From contig MCFH01000086.1 of the NCBI GenBank assembly GCA_002104945.1, positions 62,001 to 126,000 on the forward strand: a DNA stretch of 64,000 nucleotides. Direction: 5' to 3'. Shown in pieces: positions 8,556 to 39,760 of this stretch (position 1 is its first letter; every line of letters begins with the position of its first letter). The DNA comes from Piromyces finnis finn. Taxonomy: Eukaryota > Fungi > Neocallimastigomycota. Below the pieces are notes generated by a model. That model saw only the letters and a program-made list of their open reading frames with translations. It was not told the origin of the DNA and searched no databases. The position numbers and the translations under genes are program-made.

Positions 8556-9269
8556 TCATATATATAACTATGAAAATGAATTATCATTTAATCATACAAA
8601 TACATACAATTCATGAATAATTTTTCATTTTTAGAATACATAAATAAATAGTTATTATTTATGTAATATTATTTTTCTAACAAAAGAATATATTAATAAA
8701 TAACTTAAAAGCTTAAAAAAATATTAGAAAAGATTTTTTTTCTTTTCATGATATATTATAAATGTCTCATTAAAGATAATAAATTTAGGTGAAGAATAAA
8801 TAATTTTTAATTTATTTTATCCTATTAATAATTATTGTTTATTTATATTTGAAAATATGAAAACGATTTTAACTGATATTATTAAAAGAAATATTTGAAA
8901 TAACTACTTTTATAAATGCTATTTCATTTAAATAAAAGTAAAAATAAAAAAAAAAAAAAAAAAAAAAAATAGGTAATGATTTTACTTTATGTAATTATAA
9001 TTAAAATAATATACTAAGTTATATTAAATTTAAAAAAAGAGGAAAGATAATAATAAAATGAAATTAACAATATTTAAATTTTGAAATTATTATTGTTGTT
9101 GTTTTCTATTTTTTTATGCTTTTTTTTTTTTTTTGTTTGTTTGCTTATTTGCTTGTTTTATTTTATTATTTATTTTTTCAAAAGGTATTATTAATTATTG
9201 AGTTTTGGATTGTTAAAGTAATGATAATCATATTAGGTTTTATAGTTTACTTTTGAATGGTCCATATAT

Positions 9270-12200
9270 TTAATTTGTATTTAAGTTATTTAATAAATTT
9301 TTAACATTATAATACTTTTGGTACTCTTCAATAGTATTTTCGAGAACGTCCTTTGAGAATAAAAGACAAGATTCAGTATTAAATAATTGCGATTTTATCT
9401 CAGAATGATCAGTTTCTAATAAATACTGTTTAATTTCATCATTATAACGTTGATAGTATGATTCATTATCTACAGATTCAACTATATTAGAAATGGATGG
9501 TGTACTAACAGATATTGAATCATCTGTATCTTCATCATCTTCAAAATGGAACATATTTTGTTTTGGATTTGTTTTTTCACGCATTTCTTTCCAGATAATA
9601 AATGAATTTGTTATACCATTACCAATACTACCATCATGACTAACCTTTTTATTATAATTTTGAATAAGCATAAGATCACGTCCTAAGCGACCAAGATCAT
9701 GATCTTTAGCTAATTCCCATTCTAAGTAACTACCTAATGTTAATAAGAATTTAATTCTACGAGAGTTAATAAGAGTAGGATCAAAGGATATAGCATTACA
9801 AAGTAATATCATTGTAACCTGGAATCTTTTTGAATATATTGGAACGAAACGGTTAAAAGAATTAAGATATGGTTGTTCTTGAACTTTAGAATTGCCATTA
9901 ATTATAATTGGTGGGCGAACTTCGCTTGGTTTATATGGTGGAATTGGTGAAGATACAATTGAACTAATAACTTTTCTTTGTTCTTCAAGAAGTGATGAAG
10001 AAAGAGATGAATGACCAACCCATTGAACTACTCGTAATTCAAAAACTTGCCATAAAGCTAATAATAATGGAAAACCAACTTGGATTAAAGTTGGATCACT
10101 TAAATTTTTAACATCATCAGCAATATCTAATATATTCTTTCGGAAAATTCCAGTATCTGGGACAGACCAAGATAGACCACTACTGCTTGGAACAGAATGA
10201 GCAGAAATTGGACCTGGCAAATGAATATTTTGATTTTGAAGATGTTGATTTGCAAAAATTTGAATACTTAAAAGATATTTTTCAATTGATGGTGGTTGTT
10301 GATTTTTGGTTTTTACAGATGATGTAGAAGTTGACTTTGGTCTTTTTGAGTGTCTAAATATTCTTTCAATGAAACGAACAGTTTGTTTTGGATAATATGT
10401 CATTAATCTAGTAGTAATTATATTAATAAGCATAGATAATAATTTTAATTTTTTAGCTAAAACAAGATTAGCACGACCTTGAGAAGCTGTATTAAACTGA
10501 AATTTATCTAAAACATTAAGCATTGATGTTATCCAAGTATAATCCTTATTGCCAAATAAAAGTTGGGAAACTGGATCATCATTTGATCCAGTTGGATATT
10601 CAATATTTGTTGGCTGGTCAGTTAAGGTTTGGAAAGCAATATTTAAGGTGATACGATTATTTTTATCTTCACCTTCTGGAATGTATTCTTCGAAATAAAA
10701 CATACTTGGTGGTTTTGATGATTGTGGATCAGTACCATCTAAATGTTTTCTTAAGGTACTATGTAATTCATGTGCTAACAAATATTCTTTAGCTGCATTT
10801 AAGTTAATTCTATTACAAGCAACCATATAATCAGTTACTTCAGCAATTGCATGTGATGGAGCACCAGCTGCAATTGCAATATTTCGAGCATGAAGAGACA
10901 TATGACCTCTTTGAATACCTTCTGTTGTTAAAGCTCTTACTGCGGCAAAATTTTGAGCAAGACCAACACAAGCGAAAATCTTTAATAATATTATTAAATT
11001 AGTTAATATTTAAACTTTTTTTAGTTTAATTAAAAAAAAGAATAAACTTACAGCTGATAAAGCTTTAGAATCTGGATTACCCATAAGACCTAAAGTATAG
11101 TGATAAACAGGGTTGGTTTTTAATACACCACCCTTTGTACCAACAGCAATTGGCATTTTAATTTCACCACAGAAGTAACGTTGTTTAACCTTTTCATTAT
11201 TGATTTCTTCTTCAATTTCCTCTATCCAATAACTAGTTAATGATTTATAATGACCCTTTACTGGTTCATTAACAGTCTCACTTGAACCAGAAGCAGCGTA
11301 TGCATGTGCAGCAGCTTCTATAGCTCTCCAATCTTGACCAGTTGCTAAAGCAACGGCATCAATACCATTTAAGATACCTTTATTATGAGTAGTTGCTCTA
11401 TAAACATCATCTTCAGCAAATTCATAAGCCTCAATAATACCTCTTGATACTTGTTCACCTGTAAATTTCTTATATTTCATTTTTTCAACTGGAATCTTAA
11501 ATGAAGCCTAAAATTATTAACATTTTATTAAAATAAAAGATAAAAATTTATTTATTTATTCCTTTACAAATACAAACATTATGTAGCATATAAACTTACA
11601 GTTACAATTCTTTCTGTACATAAATTAGAAACAATTCTTAATCCAATACGACCATTTGTTAAATCTGCAAGGAATGGTGCAACACCTTCTGCAACTGTAC
11701 TAGCGCAATTAGCACCTTTAACAATATAGATTATATTATATTAAAATTTTTAGACTTTTTTTTAAAATAATATTAATAGTAGTAATACTAATGCTTACCC
11801 ATTGCATCGCAAACATCAATATGAAAATGACAAACTAACCATTCACTTGATTGAGAATCAAAAACTACTTGATTTGGTCTTACTTTTCTTTCATTCTTTT
11901 TAATTCTACGAACTACCATATTTACAACACCACCACCTCTAGAGTACATATTTTGACAATATTGATTGGCAAATATGATAATTTCATTTTTCATATCATT
12001 TAACTAGTGATTCAATTATTATTTTAAAAAAAAATAATATATACTATAATTATTAATAACTCATATTTTCATATTGATAAATACTTCTTTTCTATTTTTA
12101 ATAATAATAATATTATTATTATTACCTTCTTTTCATTTTCATCCAATTTATCATCTGGAATATCTAAGATTACTACTTGTGCAAAAGTAATATTTCTTTC

Positions 12201-12993
12201 GGAGGTTTTGGTAAAAAAGGTTTTTCCTTTACCAAATTGAGAAACAGTTTTTGCTGCACCAGAAACTGCAGCTACTACCGATGGTTCTTCGATTGCCATT
12301 GGAACTATTATTGATTTGTTATCAATATTAAAATTTAATGCTACACCAACAGGTAATCCAAGTGTACTAAAATATTCATATATATTAATAATTTAAATAG
12401 AGTATTATTTGATAAATAAAGTTGTAATTAATAATATTTTAAAATAATTAGTACTTAATATTAAATTTTATTCTCAAAAATAATTATACTTTAACATTTT
12501 AAATTAGCAATGAAATATTATTGTATTTAAAAAAAGTATTTTACTTAATTATAGGAAATTTACTAATATTTTAGTAAATTTCCTATAATTACATAAAAAT
12601 GTCTTCAAATATTTAAATTAAATAAAATAAAATATTTAATAACAATAATTACCCTACACAATTTTCAATCATATTATCAGCAATATGTTCATCTAATGAT
12701 GTAATTGGAAATTTTTCTTCATGTACACCCAAACTACTTAAATCTGAAGTTGATTCATTACGATTAATTGAAACATCTGAAGCAGATTCAGTTAAATTAG
12801 ATAATGAACCTAATGAAGGCGAATTAAGGAATGAAGTTTTAGATATAAGTGGTGAAATTGGTGGAAAGAGATTTGGAAATGCTAATTTCAATTGATTTTG
12901 TCTTTCCTTTAATGCTTTTTTGTAAAAACCAGACCAAATGTTTACTTTTTGTTCTGTTTGAGACTTAACTTCTATTGGTACTGTCGTCATCAT
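9270..12993 (-). CDS. mvaA: Class II (bacterial MvaA-type) HMG-CoA reductase, 6 exons, no membrane/sterol-sensing domain, ~500 aa C-terminal extension of unknown function
   Basis: Motifs [57 protein letters not shown] and [30 protein letters not shown] are diagnostic of class II HMGR. The reading frame stays open ~500 codons past the end of the core. Confidence 0.92.
12546..12591. repeat. Perfect 21-bp inverted repeat (hairpin, 4-nt loop) inside intron 1 of the HMGR gene
   Basis: taattataggaaatttactaa-tatt-ttagtaaatttcctataatta. The arms are exact reverse complements. The intron spans 12652-12367 on the minus strand. Confidence 0.95.
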
Positions 12994-15900
12994 TACTTTA
13001 ATATATTAATATACTTTAATTATTATTTACTTAAAAAAAAAAACACCAGAAATATTTACTTTTATTTTTTTTTTCTTAAAAATTTTAAAATTATCAATAT
13101 TATTATACTATTCAAAAATAAATAAGATAATTAGTATTATCATTAATATTAAAATATTAAAATTATATAAATTAATATTTACAAATATTTTCCAATTTTT
13201 TTTATTAAAAAATATAAAAAAGGAAAAAGGTTTATATTATATATTATTAAATAGAAACAATATATATAAAGTTAGTATATTTATTGCGAGTTAAGTTATA
13301 AAATCTTTCTTTTTATTTTTAAATAGAAATATTAATTAAATCAATATTTATATATTTTTGTTTATTATTATAATAGCAAGAATATTTGTAATAAATAATG
13401 TAACTTATTTTTTCTAGAATTGTAATCATAAAAAAAAGATATTTCTAATTTAAATATTAATTTCTGTAATTAATAATTACTTTAAAAATTATGATATTAT
13501 GTTTATATCTATATCACTTATATACTTTTATGTTTATAAATGAATTATTTTAATTTTAAAGATAACTTTTTTCTATGTTTATATTATTATAATAAATATT
13601 TTTCATTTTTATTATTTACTTATTATCAATTCAAGATTTTAAGATTTTTACTCTTTTCTTCCTTACTATCTTTTTTTTTTTTTTTTTTTAATTTGTTCTT
13701 CTATTAAACTTTTTAAAAAAAATAGTTATGAAAAAAAAAAATAAAGTTATGAAAAAAAAAAAAGGCATATAATATTTTAAATGATAATATGATTAATTAA
13801 AATTAATTATATTTCCAATATATTATATTATAATAATATGTATATATATTATGAGATTTAACAATATATTTGAAATAAAATAAACATCAAACATCAAAAA
13901 TAATATATTATATATATTTTGATTTAATTTATATATACATAGAATTTATTATATAATATATTTAGCCATACTTTAGTTTTTAATCAAATATAAAACTAAA
14001 ATAAATATAAAAATTTCAAATAAATTAATATCAATATTAAACACAAATTATTTATTCCAAACTTCAATTTATAACTTCGTATATAATGATATATTAATAT
14101 TAATTATTTAATACAGTTTTATTATAATATTTATTATTAAAAAATTTTTTAGTATAAATTTTATTAAATGAAAAAATTAATTATTTCATAGTAAAAATAT
14201 TATTCCTTAGAATGTTGATATAATTTCCAATATTTATAATATTTATGGTAAGACTAAAACAGTCATAAAAATACAATCTAATTATTAAAGGAAAATCAAT
14301 AAGTATAATACCATTTCTTCTATATTGCCATTATCCAAATCATTATTCAAGGGTATTAAGAATGTCGACACCAACAAAAGAATATCAAAGGTTTATTCTG
14401 TGAAAAAAGAGAAAATAAAAGATGCTTAATTTCAACTCTATCATTGTAAATTTAATTTATTTAATAACGAGTATCGGTTAATAAAGTATGTTTATTATTA
14501 TTATTATTATTAAATGTTAAAATAAAATAGTACTGTTAAATTAATTTTTTTGTTTTGTTTGATTAATCATTTTACATTACATTAAAAGATAGAATATTAA
14601 ATTTCATATAATTTTTTGTGGTATTAACCCTATTCTCTCTCACAAAAAAAAAAAAAAAAAAAAAAATCTTTATAAATAAAATCATAAAATTGTCTTTAAT
14701 TCTATTTTTTTTTTTTTTTTCAAAAATAAAAAAAATATTAATTTGTCTATTTTTCCACTTAATAAAAGATTAATATTTATTAAATAATATAATCTTAAAT
14801 ATATTAATTATATATAATTATATATTGGTTATAAATGTAAAGTTAAATACTTAATCTTTTAATTTAAACTTTGTGAAATATAATATATAACATTAAAATG
14901 TTATTGTCATATTATAATTTAATTTAAATAAAATTTTATTTATTTATACAGAAACTTAATAAAAATTATTTTAGTTAGTATAATAAAATGAAAAATATTC
15001 CATTATTGATATTTAATATTAATTATAACAATAATATTCTAATTAATAGAAGGCAATATAAAGAAATAAAACATTCTTATTTTTTGAAAGAATATTAATT
15101 TATTTATATTTAATCTTTAAAACTAATGATTTAATTTGTATATAAAAAAAAGATTAAGTTTTATTAAAGTTTTTAAACTTTAATTATATCTTATTTCATA
15201 ATATATTATCTGTACTACATAAATAAATAAATAAGATAATAATTAATGATAATAATCGTTTGGTATTACTATTTATTATTATTAATAGTGATTATTAACG
15301 AAGGGTAAAGAGAAAAGATTTTTTATTTATAGCAGTAATATATATTAGAGAAAGAATAATATACTTTTCATTATACATCATGAATAAAAAAAATTATTCT
15401 GTTTAATTCAAAATAATTAATACTAATTATTTGTTTGTTATATATTTATTAATTTATTAAAAAATCTATTTTAATTGAATTATATTATTATATTTATAAA
15501 AATACAGTTATTAATAATATAACCAGTATAACCCAAATTATAATAAATTTAAGTAATATTTAGTTATAGTAATTATTAAAAGAAAAAAAAGATAAATATT
15601 AAATTTTGTATATAATGATCCAAAATATATTATAAGAAAGAAAAAAATTCTTACTGAAAACATTAAAATGTAATGGTAACAATACGTCAATATAATATAT
15701 GCACAAATTTATATTAGAATTTGATATCATTTATTTATTGCTGTTTATATACTTTATTAATGAAAAATACCATATTATTCATATAAAATTTAATTTTATA
15801 AAATTTAAATTTCATTTATATTTCAATAATCTATTACTGCAACAACTATCATTATTATCATTTTTATTTAATTTATTTTTTTAAATAATAATAAGCATGC

Positions 15901-24816: not shown

Positions 24817-27800
24817 TTAATTTAAATTTGTTTTCATTAATTCTCTAAACTTAAATATATATGAAAGTTTTTGTTTTACATCTTTAGGTATAGGTTGGTC
24901 TAAATAGTAACTATAATATAAAAAATATATAGAATTATAAGAATATTATTTTATATTTATTAGTTGAAGAAAATATTGTATTTTAAATTAATACTTACAT
25001 TATATGTTTTTTATAATTAATATCTTGATAATTAAGATATTGTAATTGGTTTGGTTTTCTTGACTCTAAAATAATATTTGTGCCATCAATAAAAAAAATT
25101 GAAAATTTTCCATAAGTTTTAATACACCAACCAACTTTTGGTATAAATGTAGTCATGGAATTAGAAGATATGCTAGATAGGGAAGAAGATGTTGATAGAG
25201 ACTCATTTGGTTGACTTTTATTTGCATTAGTAACTGTTGCTGATGAAGTGGCATTAGAAGAAATAGTAATTGGTGATGAATTTCTCTTTAATTGAGAAAA
25301 ATCATGTATAGAATTCTCATTAGTTTTTGATATATCTAAATTAAATAATAAATATAAATTAATTAAAAGCTGATTTGAATTTAAATTAATATTTTTAATT
25401 ACTATCATTGATTTACCATCATAATTTTCTTTATTACTAGTTTCACTTATTGATGCTAATATTTCTGAATTGGAATAAATATTTGAGGAACATAAATTCT
25501 TTTTCGAATTTAGATTCATTTCTGAATGAGCCTTACGTAACAAACCCTCTGAGACTATGAAAATAATATTAAATTTATTAATTAATTATTATTAAAGAAT
25601 TTTATAATTTTACTAATATTAGTTTGTGACAAAAATAAAAATTTACTTACATTTATTATGCTTATTATTTTTGGATTGTAAATAAGACGTTGAATAAATG
25701 TTATTATTATTTTTATTAAATGTCGTCTGATTTATTGACATTGAACTCGAATTAAATAAAGTTGTTGATTGAATACTGTTTGCAGTATTATCGGTCGTAT
25801 AATTGTCTATTTTTTTTATAGCGCTATTTGAAATATTTTGCTCTATTTGTTTGAAATAAAAAAAATTATATATTTAATATAAATAAATATTATATATAAT
25901 TATTTTAATAATAGCTATTACCTTGAGATGTTTGATTTATTTTATTTGTGATTGATGATGAAATAATTCCTTCTGTATCATCATTAATAATATGAGAAGA
26001 AGAATTCTTTTCATTTAATAATAGATTTGAATTTGTGCTAGGAGGAATGTGATTGATAGAATATACATTATTAATAGATGCATTTTCTTCCTCTAATTTT
26101 TTATCTTCCATTACTTTACATTTAACAATTAAAGGGTATTTTGATATGTTTTTATTACTCTGGAAAGAAAGACATTGCTTAAAACATACTTGAAAATGAT
26201 TTATTATTGGATAAACAATAGATGGATCATGTTCATTTATATGCTCAATTAATTTTGTTGATAACAAATATGATGAATCAAAATTTGAAATCGGTATCTT
26301 TACTGAAAAAAAATTATTTTTTATTGCTTTTACATTTACATTATTCATAATGTTTTGTTCTTCTAAATATTTAGTTGGAAAACTAATTTCGATAGCTTGA
26401 TGTGATATACGAAGACTCAATTTTACATCATTATAAAACCTCATCTCAAAATCAGGATATGGTTGATTTTCCATTAGAAGACATTGTGCTTGAGAAGAAT
26501 AAAATATTATCTTCGGGGTTTTGGAACGAATATACTGAATAATTTTCGATATTGCAGAATATATTGAATACAATGATGAAGGAAGATTTCTAAAAATATA
26601 TACCGTTTTAGGTGCATTTGATTTTAGGATATTTTCTCCTGATTCAGTTTCGGAAAATGAATCTTTATTATAAACAGAAATCTAATTATGTTTTTAATAA
26701 TAAAAATAATATATATATATATATGTGTGTGTGTGTATGTATTTATATATTTATAATTTATTATTTTTTAATCAATAAATTAATTAATTAATTAATTAAT
26801 ATATTTTTAAACTATTATAATCATTATTATTTTTTACATTACCTTCTCACCCTTTCCATTAATTATTAATATATAATTGTCTTTGGTAAATCTAACAAAA
26901 ACATGACCACTTTTTAAAATTTCTAATTTTCCAGCTTTAAAAGAAACCTTACATGGTTTTAACCTTTCTGTTGATATAATAATATTTTCATCTTCATGTT
27001 TTAAATTAACCGGTGATAATGATAAAGATGTATGTGGTTGTTTAATTGATGATAAAGAATGCTGTTTTCTGATTCCATGATTAAATTTAATGTTTTCTGA
27101 AACTGAAAATTTACTATCAAAATTGTCAGATGATTTTTTTGATTTCGGTATATTTTGAAAATCATTTAACACCATGTTTGAATAATTGTTATTTAATTCA
27201 TTTATATCATAATCTAATAATACATTATTATTTGATAATATTTTTGAGTCTCTATAATATATATTGGAATCTTTAATATTATCAATGTTGTTATTTGATG
27301 TTTTAATATTTTCTATTGATGGATTCGTAGATGATATTGATGATGTATATGGTTGAGAATTATATTTATCATTCAAATTTAAACTACTTGATTTTGATAA
27401 TGGATAACTTTTATATTTTTTATTATAATTTTCATATATATTAGAAGGATTTCTTATATCATTTATTTGATTATTAATATTATTAACATTTGTGCTGGTA
27501 TCATTATTTATATTAATATTATCAGTGTTGCTACTATTATGTTGTATTCGGTCTAATATATTAGATTTATTTTCATTTTTATCATTTTCTTTTGTTAATG
27601 AATTATTATATAAAAAATTATAATTTAAAATCTTTTCTTTTTTAATAGCTGAGGAAGTTATATTTGAGGTATCATGATTATAATAAATATTTTTATTAAA
27701 ATCATTATTAGGATTTTGATCAACTTTTTTTCTATTTAACTTATTTTGATTCTCTTTATTTGGTATATCATATAACTCTGAAGGTTTATTTTTATTATCA

Positions 27801-31479: not shown

Positions 31480-33043
31480 TTAGTAGAGACCACACCAGTT
31501 ACCATCTTCAACACCCCATTTACCGTCATTATCGGTATAATAAATTTCATTAGTGTATTGACAACATGGGTAGCCAAGTTTTTGAGACCAGCATTCATTA
31601 TATTTACATGTATATTTAATACCACACCATTCATTATTTTCAACACCCCATTTTCCATCATTGTCAGTATATACAACTTCACAACCATTACAACATTTGT
31701 AACCAAGATTGATACTAAAACAACTATTATTAGATGTTTGACTTGAGTTTGTAGTAGTGGTAGTTTTAACAGTTGTAGTAGTCTTAATAGTTGTTTTTGT
31801 TACTGGTTTTTCATTTTTACAATGACTGTAATCAACAACACAAGATTGTTCATTTTCCCAACCCCAAAGAGAACCATCACCACCTGTAGCGCCAATTTCA
31901 CAATATTCACAGTAAGGGAAACCGTTTGGTGCCATATCATCAAAATTAAATGTTGGAACATTCGTTAATGATGATGGGCCGTTAAGATGTGGCTTTAACC
32001 AGGTCATTTGCATTGGGAACTTATCTCCTTTTGGTTCAAGTGAATACATATAAGATCCCCACCATGGACCAGCAGCCCACCATGCCCATCCAACAACATT
32101 TTCAGAATTTTGTTCTAAATAGGTAATAGCTTCTTCAACACAAGCCTTACATTCATTATTAATAGCAGCTCCTAACTCACCAATGAAGCCTTTTAAATTA
32201 TTGGCTTTTAACCATTCAACAAAGTCAACAAAAAGTTTGTTACAAGGTCTTTGTACACATTGTTCATGAGTACCTGAATAATCAGAATCGAAATATTGAT
32301 GAACTTCAAAAATAATATTTTTATCTTTAGAACTGAAATATCTAAGGGCAACTGCAGAATTAGCTTCCCCATAGAATGTTTGTTTCCAATTCCAAGCACC
32401 AGTATAGGCATTTCCCGGAACAAGAACATTGTTGTTAGCACCAGTAGCACGGATAGCGTCAACAGCATCACGAGCGGCCGCAAACCATTGGGCTGTTGGC
32501 ATATCATGTGGTTCATTAACTAAACCAAACCAAACTTTTTCATTACTTTTGTATTTTTGAGCTAATCTTTTCCATAAATCTGAAAAAGCTGAGTTAGGAA
32601 CCTGACTAGTACCAATAACTGCATTTTTGTATCTTGCAAAATTATGAGGATTAAGAATTGCAACAGCTCCTGCTTTAGTAATGTAAGTAATAACTTCATC
32701 TAAACGTCCTAATTCTGTAGCATCAAAATCAGCATTTAAACTTCTTTGTAAACGCTCCCATGCAAAACCTACACGAAAGACATTCATACCTTGATCAATT
32801 GTAGTTTGGATTGCTTTAATGTCAGGATAAATATAGTGCTTATTGTAAGTACCTGGATATTCTCCTTGACCAAATTCAGCACCAGATTCATTAACACCAG
32901 TCTATCATTATGATTAAAATATATTAAAATTATATTATTTTATTTATTTATTTATCATATTATTTTTAAACTTACAAATTGGTTTTTAGAAAATACTAAT
33001 CCAATAATGGATAAAAAAATTGTAAAAATATTGTAGAATTTCA

Positions 33044-38905: not shown

Positions 38906-39760
38906 ATGGGATTATTAACACCAATTTTCAATAACATCTTCATTAAATTAACCGGTCAAGACCCACATGATTTTCGCTTTAAGCAAGGAAATGTACCATT
39001 ATCACAACTCCATGAAGTTGTGTTTGGTTTTGCTTTATATCTTACTGTCGTTTTTTCAATTCAACATATTATGAAAAAGCATAATCCAATTAGATTGAAA
39101 TGGATGAATTTCTTACATAATTGTATTCTTTGTGTTGGCTCAGCAATTCTTGTAACATTATTCATGGAAATTATAATTCCAATGATTTACAATCATGGTT
39201 TCTATTACTCAATTTGCAATCCAGCTTCTCGTGACCCAGCTTCTGGTATTGAAATACTTTATTATCTTAATTATTTATTCAAATGGTATGAATTCATGGA
39301 TACTGTATACCTTGCTTTAAAGAAAAAGAAGTTACAATTCTTACATGTTTATCACCATGCTTTCACCATGATCCTTTGTTATGTTGAATTAGATGGTGGA
39401 GCTGCTTCTTCATGGTTTGTTATTTGTCTTAATATCTTCATTCACGTCATTATGTACTATTATTATGCTCGTACTAGTATTATTAAGAAGCCAGTATGGT
39501 GGAAAAAACATTTAACTACTTTCCAAATTACACAATTTGTACTTGATTTAATAGTAATTAACTTTGCTTCTTACAACTATTTTGTTAACAAATACAATGT
39601 TAACTTACCAGTTTATGGTCAATGTTATTCAAAGAACGATAGAACTGCACTTGTTTCATGGTTCCTTATTTCTTCATATCTTGTTCTTTTTGTTGACTTT
39701 TTCATTAAAACTTACAAGGTTAAGAGTAAAAAACAAGTTTCTGCCAAAAAGTCCAACTGA
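38906..39760 (+). CDS. ELO: Fatty acid elongase (ELO/GNS1/SUR4 family), intronless
   Basis: Motifs YLNYLFKWYEFMDTVYLAL, FLHVYHH, NIFIHVIMYYYY, WKKHLTTFQITQF and YLVLFVDFFIKTY; Lys-rich C-terminus. Confidence 0.95.
   Translation: MGLLTPIFNNIFIKLTGQDPHDFRFKQGNVPLSQLHEVVFGFALYLTVVFSIQHIMKKHNPIRLKWMNFLHNCILCVGSAILVTLFMEIIIPMIYNHGFYYSICNPASRDPASGIEILYYLNYLFKWYEFMDTVYLALKKKKLQFLHVYHHAFTMILCYVELDGGAASSWFVICLNIFIHVIMYYYYARTSIIKKPVWWKKHLTTFQITQFVLDLIVINFASYNYFVNKYNVNLPVYGQCYSKNDRTALVSWFLISSYLVLFVDFFIKTYKVKSKKQVSAKKSN

Follow-up and report, generated by a model that had tools for sequence, protein, structure and literature searches.

A class II HMG-CoA reductase joined to a C-terminal domain of predicted terpene-synthase fold in the anaerobic gut fungus Piromyces finnis

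In textbooks and recent reviews HMG-CoA reductases (HMGRs) are divided into class I enzymes, which are eukaryotic or archaeal, and class II enzymes, which are prokaryotic. A gene of the anaerobic gut fungus Piromyces finnis, located in the 64,000 nucleotides of contig MCFH01000086.1 analyzed here (the window), was proposed in an earlier note on this DNA to encode a class II enzyme. This raises the questions how a fungus came to possess such a reductase, whether it is the only one of the organism, and what the complete protein may do.

The gene lies on the minus strand between 12993 and 9270, with the ATG at 12993-12991 and the stop codon at 9272-9270, which equals the span given in the earlier note. 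It comprises six exons and five introns and encodes a soluble protein of 1,022 residues. The features are as follows.

12994..13074, minus strand: 5' UTR, at least 50-81 nt; contigs reach 13043 (three runs) or 13074 (one run)
12653..12993, minus strand: exon 1, start codon, conserved WSGFYKK..ERQ.QL helix region, Ser-rich low-complexity insert and ..ADNMIENCV(G), ending in phase 2; covered by contig piece 12653-13043/74 with 0 mismatches
12367..12652, minus strand: intron 1, 286 nt, GTAATT..TTTTAG, 11% GC; joint 12366/12653 in 4 runs
12126..12366, minus strand: exon 2, HMG-CoA-binding part with EEPSVVAA; PF00368 E 1.9e-16; TIGR00532 profile positions 73-124
12004..12125, minus strand: intron 2, 122 nt, GTAATA..CACTAG, phase 0
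11799..12003, minus strand: exon 3, cofactor helix at about 11929-11958, then ..HIDVCDAM(G)
11716..11798, minus strand: intron 3, 83 nt, GTAAGC..TTAAAG, phase 1, splitting the DAMG/AN motif
11600..11715, minus strand: exon 4, small-domain segment beginning with the split (G); PF00368 E 3.1e-4; TIGR00532 profile positions 202-236
11508..11599, minus strand: intron 4, 92 nt, GTAAGT..TTTTAG
11052..11507, minus strand: exon 5, catalytic core with THNKG (Lys), NGID (Asn) and GQDWR (Asp); PF00368 E 1.9e-26; TIGR00532 E 1.6e-24
10980..11051, minus strand: intron 5, 72 nt, GTAAGT..TTAAAG
10773..10979, minus strand: exon 6, first about 69 codons, reductase C-terminal flap with GIQRGHM (catalytic His) and SLHARNIA; PF00368 profile positions 338-368, TIGR00532 365-395, reductase end from the alignment to 6DIO and 5WPJ
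9273..10772, minus strand: exon 6, remainder, 500-codon C-terminal extension in the same open frame without a stop and in the same transcript
9270..9272, minus strand: stop codon TAA
9200..9269, minus strand: 3' UTR, at least 70 nt; contigs extend further

The gene is real and expressed with this six-exon structure. In each of 4 runs from 3 studies one transcript-like contig of 3.2-3.3 kb spans 9200 to 13043/13074 with 0 mismatches and with the introns spliced out. The five introns described earlier were thus confirmed; all of them run from GT to AG, and their GC content is 10-14% versus 29-35% for the exons. Four of the exon joints are listed directly in the contigs, while the fifth, at intron 2, falls inside a skipped simple repeat, where the record coordinates agree with the model: the contig pieces stop at 12005 and restart at 12134, and the 6 unplaced letters in the skipped AAT repeat fit a joint 12003/12126. 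Two trivial explanations were rejected. An erroneous fusion of two gene models is ruled out by the single open frame, the single transcript and the conservation of the fusion across kingdoms, and contamination with bacterial DNA by the spliceosomal introns, the GC content of 13-30% throughout the window and a neighboring gene for a GH5 cellulase with fungal dockerins.

The class II reductase part extends over about residues 85-522 of the 1,022. Searches were run with each exon separately, with the database orthologue P0003 standing in for the full-length protein. Against the class II model TIGR00532 the exon pieces give matches in the correct order (profile positions 73-124, 149-196, 202-236, 249-355 and 365-395), and their scores total about 214 bits, the exons being scored singly and the cut-off of 259.95 applying to whole proteins. 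The full-length orthologues from Neocallimastix, which are 86-90% identical, reach 288 and 290 bits on this model, but only 38 bits on the class I model TIGR00533, for which the cut-off is 441.8. On the exons of the window TIGR00533 gives E 0.043 at best and in one piece only, so that the protein does not belong to class I as defined by TIGR00533 or TIGR00920. The catalytic residues Glu83, Lys267, Asn271, Asp283 and His381 (P. mevalonii numbering, alignment to 1QAX) are all present in exons 2, 5 and 6 of the window, and the corresponding columns are invariant across 17 aligned sequences. EEPS is located in exon 2, DAMG/AN across intron 3, HNKG, NGID and GQDWR in exon 5, and RGHM and HARN in exon 6. 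The assignment to class II is therefore borne out by the ordered profile matches and the complete set of catalytic motifs.

The absence of an N-terminal membrane or sterol-sensing domain, also proposed before, is confirmed by the low hydropathy and the lack of any Pfam membrane domain. None of the 19-residue Kyte-Doolittle windows reaches 1.6; the maximum, 1.53, belongs to a buried helix of the C-terminal domain, and the highest value within the N-terminal 113 residues is 0.72. Like the class II archetype from Pseudomonas mevalonii (1QAX), which the Neocallimastix proxy matches with E 3e-82 over residues 44-412, the protein carries the catalytic Glu, Lys, Asp and His motifs, is soluble and lacks a membrane domain. 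Unlike that enzyme, which has about 428 aa, is NADH-specific (DQLLNSL) and catabolic, the Piromyces protein reads CQNMYSR in the cofactor helix, bears an N-terminal insert of low complexity and continues into a C-terminal domain of about 470 aa, and its gene contains five introns.

These approximately 470 C-terminal residues had been overlooked in the earlier note; exon 6 continues for about 500 codons beyond the reductase. Besides a short linker, the tail contains a three-strand beta cap (PSMFYFE.., ..LNIAF) that precedes a helical bundle; two disordered inserts lie at residues 141-213 and 411-425 of the C-terminal piece. Structures were predicted independently for the tail from the window (first model, pLDDT 76.7, pTM 0.80) and for its Phytophthora orthologue (second model, 87.0 and 0.89). 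The best 50 VIA-align matches are all terpene or prenyl synthases, with Z from 15.4 to 11.8 for the first and from 17.8 to 14.0 for the second model, where helical bundles may reach Z about 13-14 from their arrangement alone. In Foldseek every one of the best 50 matches listed for the second model is a terpene synthase, an N-prenyltransferase or a prenyl-diphosphate synthase (probability 1.00, E 1.7e-3, the E-values staying just above 1e-3), and all but two of those listed for the first model are enzymes of the same kinds. Drimenol synthase (7CJY), a pimarane-type synthase (7E4O) and a polyprenyl synthetase (3NF2) align with the predicted models over 258-280 residues at Z 15.4-17.8 and an rmsd of 3.7-3.9. 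As far as predicted models can tell, the tail shares its alpha-helical fold with class I terpene synthases and prenyl-diphosphate synthases.

At the sequence level the tail is unlike these enzymes: the identity is 6-14%, and a three-strand cap precedes the bundle. No family match was obtained with Pfam and NCBIfam. The Pfam terpene and prenyl synthase models (PF03936, PF19086, PF00348, PF00494) matched none of the 34 aligned members at E<=10, and neither did a profile of the tail match any PDB sequence at E<=10. Comparison by hhalign with a bacterial squalene-synthase/polyprenyl-synthase fusion gave a probability of 0.1. In the ESM Atlas the search by features returned at best 0.85, to unrelated helical-repeat families only, and the search by shape a TM of at most 0.28. 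The motifs DDxxD and NSE/DTE and a second Asp-rich motif are absent from the invariant and near-invariant columns of alignments with 28 and 34 sequences, and the single widespread acidic residue, located in the 'LLCDA' helix, is Asn in the Piromyces gene and in Neocallimastix. Since DDxxD and NSE/DTE are missing, the tail is probably no terpene synthase of the conventional kind.

Conservation of the tail extends from fungi to oomycetes and ciliates, and the tail was found only in fusion with HMGR. Every match longer than 300 aa also contains HMGR or its last helices; hits of that length which start inside the domain, at first sight candidates for a stand-alone tail, begin with the last reductase helices and were rejected as cut gene models. 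Since Mortierellomycota, Glomeromycota and Fonticula have lost the tail but retain the reductase, the tail must be dispensable for catalysis; its presence changes state at least 5 times on the tree.

We estimate a probability of roughly 0.8 that the protein is a vertically inherited class II HMGR, the sole HMGR of this genome, joined to a tail of terpene-synthase fold. From the models and the missing motifs we infer that the tail would be an isoprenoid-binding regulatory or pseudo-enzyme domain, binding an isoprenoid-type ligand and regulating or scaffolding the reductase to which it is fused. In this way it may take over the part in regulation that falls to the sterol-sensing membrane domain in class I enzymes. 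Yeast Hmg1/2 and human HMGCR catalyze the same reaction at the same position of the pathway and likewise combine a core with a large extra domain, which in class I is regulatory; their extra domain is an N-terminal sterol-sensing membrane domain, whereas that of Piromyces is C-terminal and soluble, with a predicted terpene-synthase fold and no transmembrane segment. More specifically, the tail could tentatively be regarded as a ligand sensor for a downstream isoprenoid (FPP, GGPP or a related diphosphate), feeding back on the soluble reductase.

A tail that lacks a ligand and acts purely as a structural module, for oligomerization, for stability or for docking to pathway enzymes or a membrane surface, is a possibility to be taken seriously, if not the one we would choose. 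The lack of catalytic motifs and the repeated loss of the domain without loss of the reductase are consistent with it, and an added assembly domain is plausible as class II reductases act as dimers or hexamers. However, the set of invariant or near-invariant polar residues (Arg, Asn, Glu, Gln, His, Asp) retained from fungi to oomycetes suits a binding site better, and the fold binds isoprenoids wherever it has been characterized. 

It is rather unlikely that the tail is an active, non-canonical terpene synthase or prenyltransferase, which would make the protein a bifunctional enzyme for mevalonate formation and conversion of a downstream prenyl diphosphate. The predicted models do show the class I terpenoid synthase fold over about 260-290 residues, and the conserved R100, N102, S113, N117, E264, Q265, R316, H358 and D359 (tail numbering) could line a diphosphate site. 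Fusions of pathway enzymes are also known in the family, namely an HMGS-HMGR-tail protein (P0325) and bacterial HMGR-mevalonate kinases. Against this stand the missing Asp-rich and NSE/DTE motifs, the Asn in the 'LLCDA' helix and the failure of all 34 members to match terpene or prenyl synthase models, and a domain of this kind would have to act on a compound five or more steps beyond mevalonate. Enterococcus faecalis MvaE (thiolase-HMGR, 7M1Z) and the bacterial HMGR-mevalonate kinases (P0170, P0200) resemble the Piromyces protein in that a class II reductase is fused to a pathway protein, but their partners are recognizable enzymes of adjacent steps, whereas the Piromyces partner is unclassified and lacks catalytic motifs.

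A PF00368 search of the 56-Mb genome revealed this locus as the only HMGR, and a search with TIGR00533 for a class I enzyme in the genome gave nothing at E<=1, which answers for this genome the earlier question of a co-existing class I copy. Genes for HMG-CoA synthase, diphosphomevalonate decarboxylase, squalene synthase and one squalene cyclase are present; squalene epoxidase was sought in the genome and not found. As the only HMGR, the class II enzyme must provide the mevalonate from which every isoprenoid of the cell is made, and would thereby supply prenyl groups, dolichol and the squalene for tetrahymanol.

The cofactor helix in exon 3 was located by aligning the Neocallimastix orthologue to 1QAX and 5WPJ and reads C-Q-N-M-Y-S-R. 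Among 40 sampled members of the clade Met4 and Arg7 occur in all and Asp1 in none, with the consensus (C/V)x(N/S)MxxR. The Arg before GGG, which the earlier note had taken as a sign of an NADPH enzyme, is therefore real, but the published NADPH-type motif of class II enzymes, (H/Y)xSxxxR (Miller and Kung 2018, quoted in PMC13370337), agrees at only one of its three positions, namely Arg7. The NADH-type residues Asp1, Val/Leu3 and Leu7 are all absent. The helix thus matches neither published motif fully and is nearest to the bacterial 'HPNMVAR' type; bacterial class II enzymes with undefined cofactor helices can be promiscuous (PMC13370337). The NADPH-preferring, biosynthetic class II enzymes of Gram-positive cocci (Streptococcus pneumoniae, 5WPJ) share Arg7 and the absence of Asp1, but differ in having His/Tyr instead of Cys at position 1 and Ser instead of Asn at position 3, and in lacking a C-terminal domain. 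With CxNMxxR, no Asp1 and an invariant Arg7, NADPH is a plausible preferred cofactor.

The best NCBIfam model bears the name 'degradative', and among solved structures that of the P. mevalonii enzyme is closest in sequence. It is nevertheless very improbable that the Piromyces enzyme works in the degradative direction, from mevalonate to HMG-CoA with NAD+, as in that bacterium: the sole HMGR of a eukaryote with the pathway genes named above is required for the biosynthetic step, Asp1 and Leu7 of the NADH type are replaced by Cys and Arg, and lovastatin impairs growth and sporulation of Phytophthora sojae, from a genus with orthologues, which fits a biosynthetic role (PMC9635365). For no member of the eukaryotic class II clade could an enzyme assay be found in the literature.

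Orthologues of the gene form a clade that includes Neocallimastigomycota, Chytridiomycota, Monoblepharidomycota, Blastocladiomycota, Mortierellomycota, Glomeromycota, Endogonales, Fonticula, oomycetes and ciliates, among the latter Stentor. In the IQ-TREE analysis (70 rows, 405 columns; unrooted, without class I outgroup) this clade splits from the 25 sampled prokaryotes at 100/100. The fungi group together at 96/98 and the Neocallimastigomycota at 100/100, with exon 5 of the window within the latter. Identity is 53-63% to other fungi, the nearest relatives, versus 38-46% to the best of the sampled free-living prokaryotes; the best prokaryotes of the genome collection reach 38-45%. Introns 1, 2, 4 and 5 recur at identical position and phase in Batrachochytrium and Funneliformis; introns 1 and 2 are shared with Allomyces as well and intron 5 with Rhizoclosmatium, and among the taxa sampled only intron 3 is confined to Neocallimastigomycota. 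A small bacterial group (P0137, P0138, P0140, P0143) stands beside or inside the eukaryote clade, and one of the contigs is clearly bacterial. A constraint of all eukaryote rows to one clade was not rejected (p-AU 0.53), and a scan of 301 Myxococcota genomes for a match to this group gave at most 54% identity.

On the evidence of the tree and the shared introns, the gene is a member of an old eukaryotic class II clade that was inherited vertically through the fungi, and it was not gained by the lineage of the anaerobic fungi. The earlier reading as an old, intronized acquisition for sterol-independent life was right about the age and the introns, but not about an acquisition tied to sterol-free anaerobic life; an early-fungal class II clade of broad distribution and vertical descent, which the earlier note itself had named as speaking against its idea, is what was found. 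Hardly any weight can be given to the idea that the ancestor of the anaerobic fungi exchanged its class I enzyme for the class II HMGR of a gut bacterium with the switch to sterol-free life, for although anaerobic fungi hold many genes of bacterial origin, the squalene cyclase looks bacterial and is intronless (one 743-aa open frame) and a class I copy was not found, the nearest relatives are other fungi and not the sampled free-living prokaryotes, the anaerobic fungi are nested within one fungal group, four introns are shared with Chytridiomycota, Blastocladiomycota and Glomeromycota, and oomycetes and a ciliate possess this C-terminal domain in fusion as well.

Class II HMGR genes were reported from demosponges, Capsaspora and 'some fungi', and an ancient transfer into the opisthokont ancestor was proposed (Conaco et al. 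2016, PMC4784904). The available portions of that paper make no mention of the C-terminal domain, of intron sharing, of oomycetes and ciliates or of class II as the only reductase. Reviews and preprints from 2026 still describe class II as prokaryotic only (PMC13370337, PMC13412983).

Tolerance to statins would be a reasonable extrapolation from the bacterial class II enzymes, and the indirect evidence is mixed. An extract rich in lovastatin lowered the anaerobic fungi of the rumen in one study (PMC3581142), and 80 ug/ml lovastatin reduced mycelial growth of Phytophthora sojae by only 31.9% (PMC9635365); Phytophthora carries orthologues of the Piromyces gene. The effect that statins and other HMGR inhibitors have on yeast or humans should not be assumed for eukaryotes with class II enzymes.

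Judged from their sequences, the eukaryotes using class II would comprise anaerobic gut fungi, chytrids (apparently including the amphibian pathogen Batrachochytrium), arbuscular mycorrhizal fungi, oomycete plant pathogens and ciliates. That class II is the only reductase in Piromyces, and that the fungal gene is old enough for introns to be shared across phyla, bears on reconstructions of how the mevalonate pathway evolved in eukaryotes. The fused terpene-synthase-like domain, which has not been described previously, is a candidate for a new mode of regulation at the rate-limiting step of this pathway. If the tail does sense a downstream isoprenoid, zoosporic fungi, oomycetes and ciliates would possess a sterol-independent counterpart of class I sterol sensing, built from a disarmed enzyme fold.

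The region 9270-12993 of the window contains a single minus-strand gene of six exons, which encodes an HMG-CoA reductase (HMGR). Its five introns are all of the GT..AG type and measure 286, 122, 83, 92 and 72 nt in order.

Features of the HMGR gene (window coordinates, from the reverse-strand reading)
12993-12653, minus strand, exon 1
12366-12126, minus strand, exon 2
12003-11799, minus strand, exon 3
11715-11600, minus strand, exon 4
11507-11052, minus strand, exon 5
10979-9273, minus strand, exon 6
9272-9270, minus strand, stop codon

Together the exons comprise 3,066 nt (1,022 codons), with a GC content of 29-35% in comparison to 10-14% for the introns. One spliced contig of 3.2-3.3 kb was found in each of four public runs from three studies, for which the RNA label is a guess only. 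These contigs cover 9200-13043 or 9200-13074 without a mismatch, and exactly the five modelled introns are absent from them. Four of the five exon joints are listed outright, and the fifth lies inside a skipped AAT repeat where the record coordinates agree with the model. As contigs that lack all five introns and have short untranslated ends are transcript-like, the gene is expressed. Each contig spans the reductase as well as a long C-terminal part, which places both on one mRNA.

The exons were searched individually, and P0003, the orthologue from Neocallimastix lanati (87% identical over exon 6), served as full-length proxy. The Pfam HMGR family PF00368 matches exons 2 to 6, which also line up consecutively on the class II model TIGR00532 (profile positions 73-124, 149-196, 202-236, 249-355 and 365-395). 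The class I model gave a best E value of 0.043, on a single exon piece. The Neocallimastix orthologues reach 288 and 290 bits on the class II model (cut-off 259.95) and 38 bits on the class I model (cut-off 441.8), and the solved structures matched are class II enzymes only, with P. mevalonii 1QAX at the top (E 3e-82). The motifs EEPS, HNKG, NGID, GQDWR and RGHM, which carry the catalytic Glu, Lys, Asn, Asp and His, are all found in the window, and their columns are invariant in an alignment of 17 sequences. No transmembrane segment was detected at the usual hydropathy threshold over 19 residues. The enzyme is a class II HMGR. The description in the earlier note, a class II enzyme with five introns and without a membrane domain, therefore holds in all points by models, motifs, transcript contigs and hydropathy; overlooked was the C-terminal extension of about 500 codons in exon 6.

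Orthologues were searched with exon 6 and the reductase domain of the proxy as queries. They were identified in Neocallimastix, in many Chytridiomycota including Batrachochytrium, Rhizoclosmatium and Spizellomyces, in Monoblepharidomycota (Gonapodya, Hyaloraphidium), Blastocladiomycota (Allomyces, Catenaria, Blastocladiella), Mortierellomycota, Glomeromycota (Funneliformis, Gigaspora, Paraglomus) and Endogonales. Outside the fungi they occur in Fonticula alba, in oomycetes (Phytophthora, Saprolegnia, Aphanomyces and others) and in the ciliate Stentor. Identity to the proxy is 46-63% within the fungi and 38-45% at best among about 600 candidate loci from prokaryotes in a species-level genome collection.

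In the IQ-TREE phylogeny (70 rows, 405 columns, LG+C20+F+G4, calculated without a class I outgroup) all 25 sampled bacteria and archaea split from the eukaryote side at 100/100. The fungi form one group at 96/98, within which fungal orders and phyla are recovered, and cluster with Fonticula at 99/92; exon 5 of the window gene falls within the Neocallimastigomycota at 100/100. The eukaryote side also takes up four short sequences, one of them bacterial (P0140), and when the eukaryotes are constrained to one clade that excludes this four-sequence group, the tree fits as well as the unconstrained one (p-AU 0.53). Among class II HMGRs, P0140 comes closest to the eukaryote clade, with about 50% identity to the fungal proxy. 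Its gene row on a bacterial metagenome contig (L084:4886-10702) looks like a bacterial sterol-type operon and comprises a squalene-synthase/polyprenyl-synthase fusion, a squalene epoxidase and a gene of the FMN-dependent dehydrogenase family that may encode a type-2 IPP isomerase. The eukaryote clade may either predate the opisthokont-SAR split or have spread between eukaryotes.

The exons of seven orthologues were mapped on their genomic loci in order to compare introns. Batrachochytrium and Funneliformis have introns at the same alignment column and in the same phase as introns 1, 2, 4 and 5 of Piromyces and Neocallimastix; Allomyces shares introns 1 and 2, and Rhizoclosmatium intron 5. Among the seven, only the anaerobic fungi contain intron 3, within DAMG|AN. 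Phytophthora has two introns at other positions and Stentor none. The shared introns indicate that an already interrupted gene existed before these fungal phyla split. It has descended vertically within the fungi, and as it also occurs in aerobic lineages, nothing about it is specific to anaerobiosis or tetrahymanol. The suggestion of an old, intronised gene is thus borne out, but not that of an acquisition linked to sterol-free life, since tree and introns reveal a broad, vertically inherited early-fungal class II clade.

In the P. finnis genome (56.46 Mb, 232 contigs) the window locus is the sole match of a six-frame search with PF00368, and the class I HMGR sought at the suggestion of the earlier note gave no match to TIGR00533 even at E<=1. 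HMG-CoA synthase (ordinary pathway copy at C200:400764-401379), diphosphomevalonate decarboxylase, squalene synthase and one squalene cyclase in an uninterrupted frame of 743 aa were found; the genome search revealed no squalene epoxidase. As the only HMGR beside an otherwise present pathway, the enzyme must work in the biosynthetic direction, and it feeds, as had been proposed, a pathway ending in squalene cyclisation without oxygen. A second HMG-CoA-synthase-like domain lies within a 3,471-aa open frame at C112:715055-715561 (plus strand).

Another frame of the window (31480-32787, minus strand) encodes a GH5 cellulase with three CBM10 fungal dockerin repeats behind it (E 2e-50 and 7e-38), an arrangement typical of the anaerobic-fungal cellulosome, which agrees with the assignment of the host. 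Further frames contain an ELO/GNS1-SUR4 fatty-acid elongase (38906-39760, plus strand; E 5e-62) and, as part of a fragment, a Plk4 polo-box 2 domain (25905-26573, minus strand; E 3e-18). Six other open frames of at least 200 aa have no Pfam match.

In the cofactor helix, DQLLNSL of P. mevalonii aligns to CQNMYSR in the window enzyme. Published motifs are Dx(V/L)xxxL for NADH and (H/Y)xSxxxR for NADPH (PMC13370337). The Arg of the NADPH type, already pointed out in the earlier note, is present and none of the NADH residues is, but the His/Tyr and the Ser are missing. The pattern of the clade is (C/V)x(N/S)MxxR, with Arg and Met invariant in 40 members. Judged from these residues NADPH is the likely cofactor, while a dual NADH/NADPH specificity is conceivable. 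The low statin affinity of bacterial class II enzymes is established. For the eukaryotic clade the evidence is indirect: lovastatin at 80 ug/ml reduced growth of Phytophthora sojae by just 31.9% (PMC9635365). Rumen anaerobic fungi were fewer with a lovastatin-rich Aspergillus terreus extract, which as a crude extract proves little either way (PMC3581142).

Exon 6 runs about 500 codons past the reductase (10772-9273). This tail can be aligned across fungi, oomycetes, ciliates and unnamed eukaryotic metagenome sequences, with the recurring blocks PSMFYFE, (V/I)[46 protein letters not shown]...AHD and R..RD. It has no matches in Pfam, PDB sequences or Atlas, and its profile finds only 221 sequences at E<=0.001 among 1.84 billion representative proteins. 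All matches longer than 300 aa include the reductase or at least its last helices, so that the domain is found only fused to class II HMGR. Mortierello- and Glomeromycota and Fonticula are among the lineages that have lost it; the tree shows at least five changes of state, and this repeated loss indicates that it is dispensable for catalysis. The model of P0003 removes an extra 54 nt of this domain as a sixth intron (L087:3726-3779), the Piromyces equivalent of which is kept in all transcript contigs; the discrepancy lies in a disordered loop and reflects either divergence between the lineages or an artefact of annotation.

P0325 (1,255 aa), whose cluster has 58 members from ENA and Logan assemblies, is probably from a eukaryotic host and joins three parts, HMG-CoA synthase, class II HMGR and the tail. 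Bacterial fusions of HMGR and mevalonate kinase (P0170 and P0200, 744-758 aa) were also seen. The annotation of P0154 from Bremia lactucae describes a fusion of phosphopantetheinyl transferase and HMGR. Since the ACPS-family gene of Phytophthora infestans stands on its own beside the HMGR gene, in convergent orientation (L089:3682-3991), two genes have probably been merged in the Bremia model.

Two independent AlphaFold models of the tail agree on a three-strand cap followed by a helical bundle.

Structure searches with the tail models (VIA-align Z for ranks 1 to 50)
Window tail: pLDDT 76.7, pTM 0.80; VIA-align Z 15.4 to 11.8; Foldseek E 0.05-0.4
Phytophthora infestans tail, 28% identical: pLDDT 87.0, pTM 0.89; VIA-align Z 17.8 to 14.0; Foldseek probability 1.00, E 1.7e-3

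VIA-align was run without Foldseek against 48,161 PDB representatives. For both models the best 50 matches are all class I terpene synthases, N-prenyltransferases or trans-prenyl-diphosphate synthases (alignments of 240-293 residues, rmsd 3.3-5.2), and Foldseek returned the same families, except for two weak, low-probability rows with the window model. Z values of 13-14 can be attained by unrelated helical bundles. A fold of the class I terpene synthase/prenyl-diphosphate synthase type is the best reading of the models, since the matches come from one uniform family, the better model scores higher and the assignment fits the biology. The Asp-rich metal-binding motifs, the catalytic hallmark of that superfamily, are absent from the tail, and the one widely conserved acidic residue of the LLCDA helix is Asn in Piromyces. 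We conclude that the tail is probably a disarmed or re-purposed isoprenoid-synthase fold. Its most likely role, at a rough probability of 0.3-0.4, may be to bind a pathway lipid and to regulate or organise the reductase. A purely structural role is only slightly less probable, and a non-canonical enzyme is improbable as those metal-binding motifs are missing.

The fusion of a putative terpene-synthase-fold domain to HMGR appears to be new, without a match in the literature and databases searched. Demosponges, Capsaspora and "some fungi" were already reported to have class II genes in a 2016 paper, which proposes an ancient class II transfer into the opisthokont ancestor (PMC4784904), and class II is still called prokaryotic in a preprint and a review of 2026 (PMC13370337, PMC13412983). 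The window gene belongs to a little-recognised eukaryotic clade of class II HMGRs.
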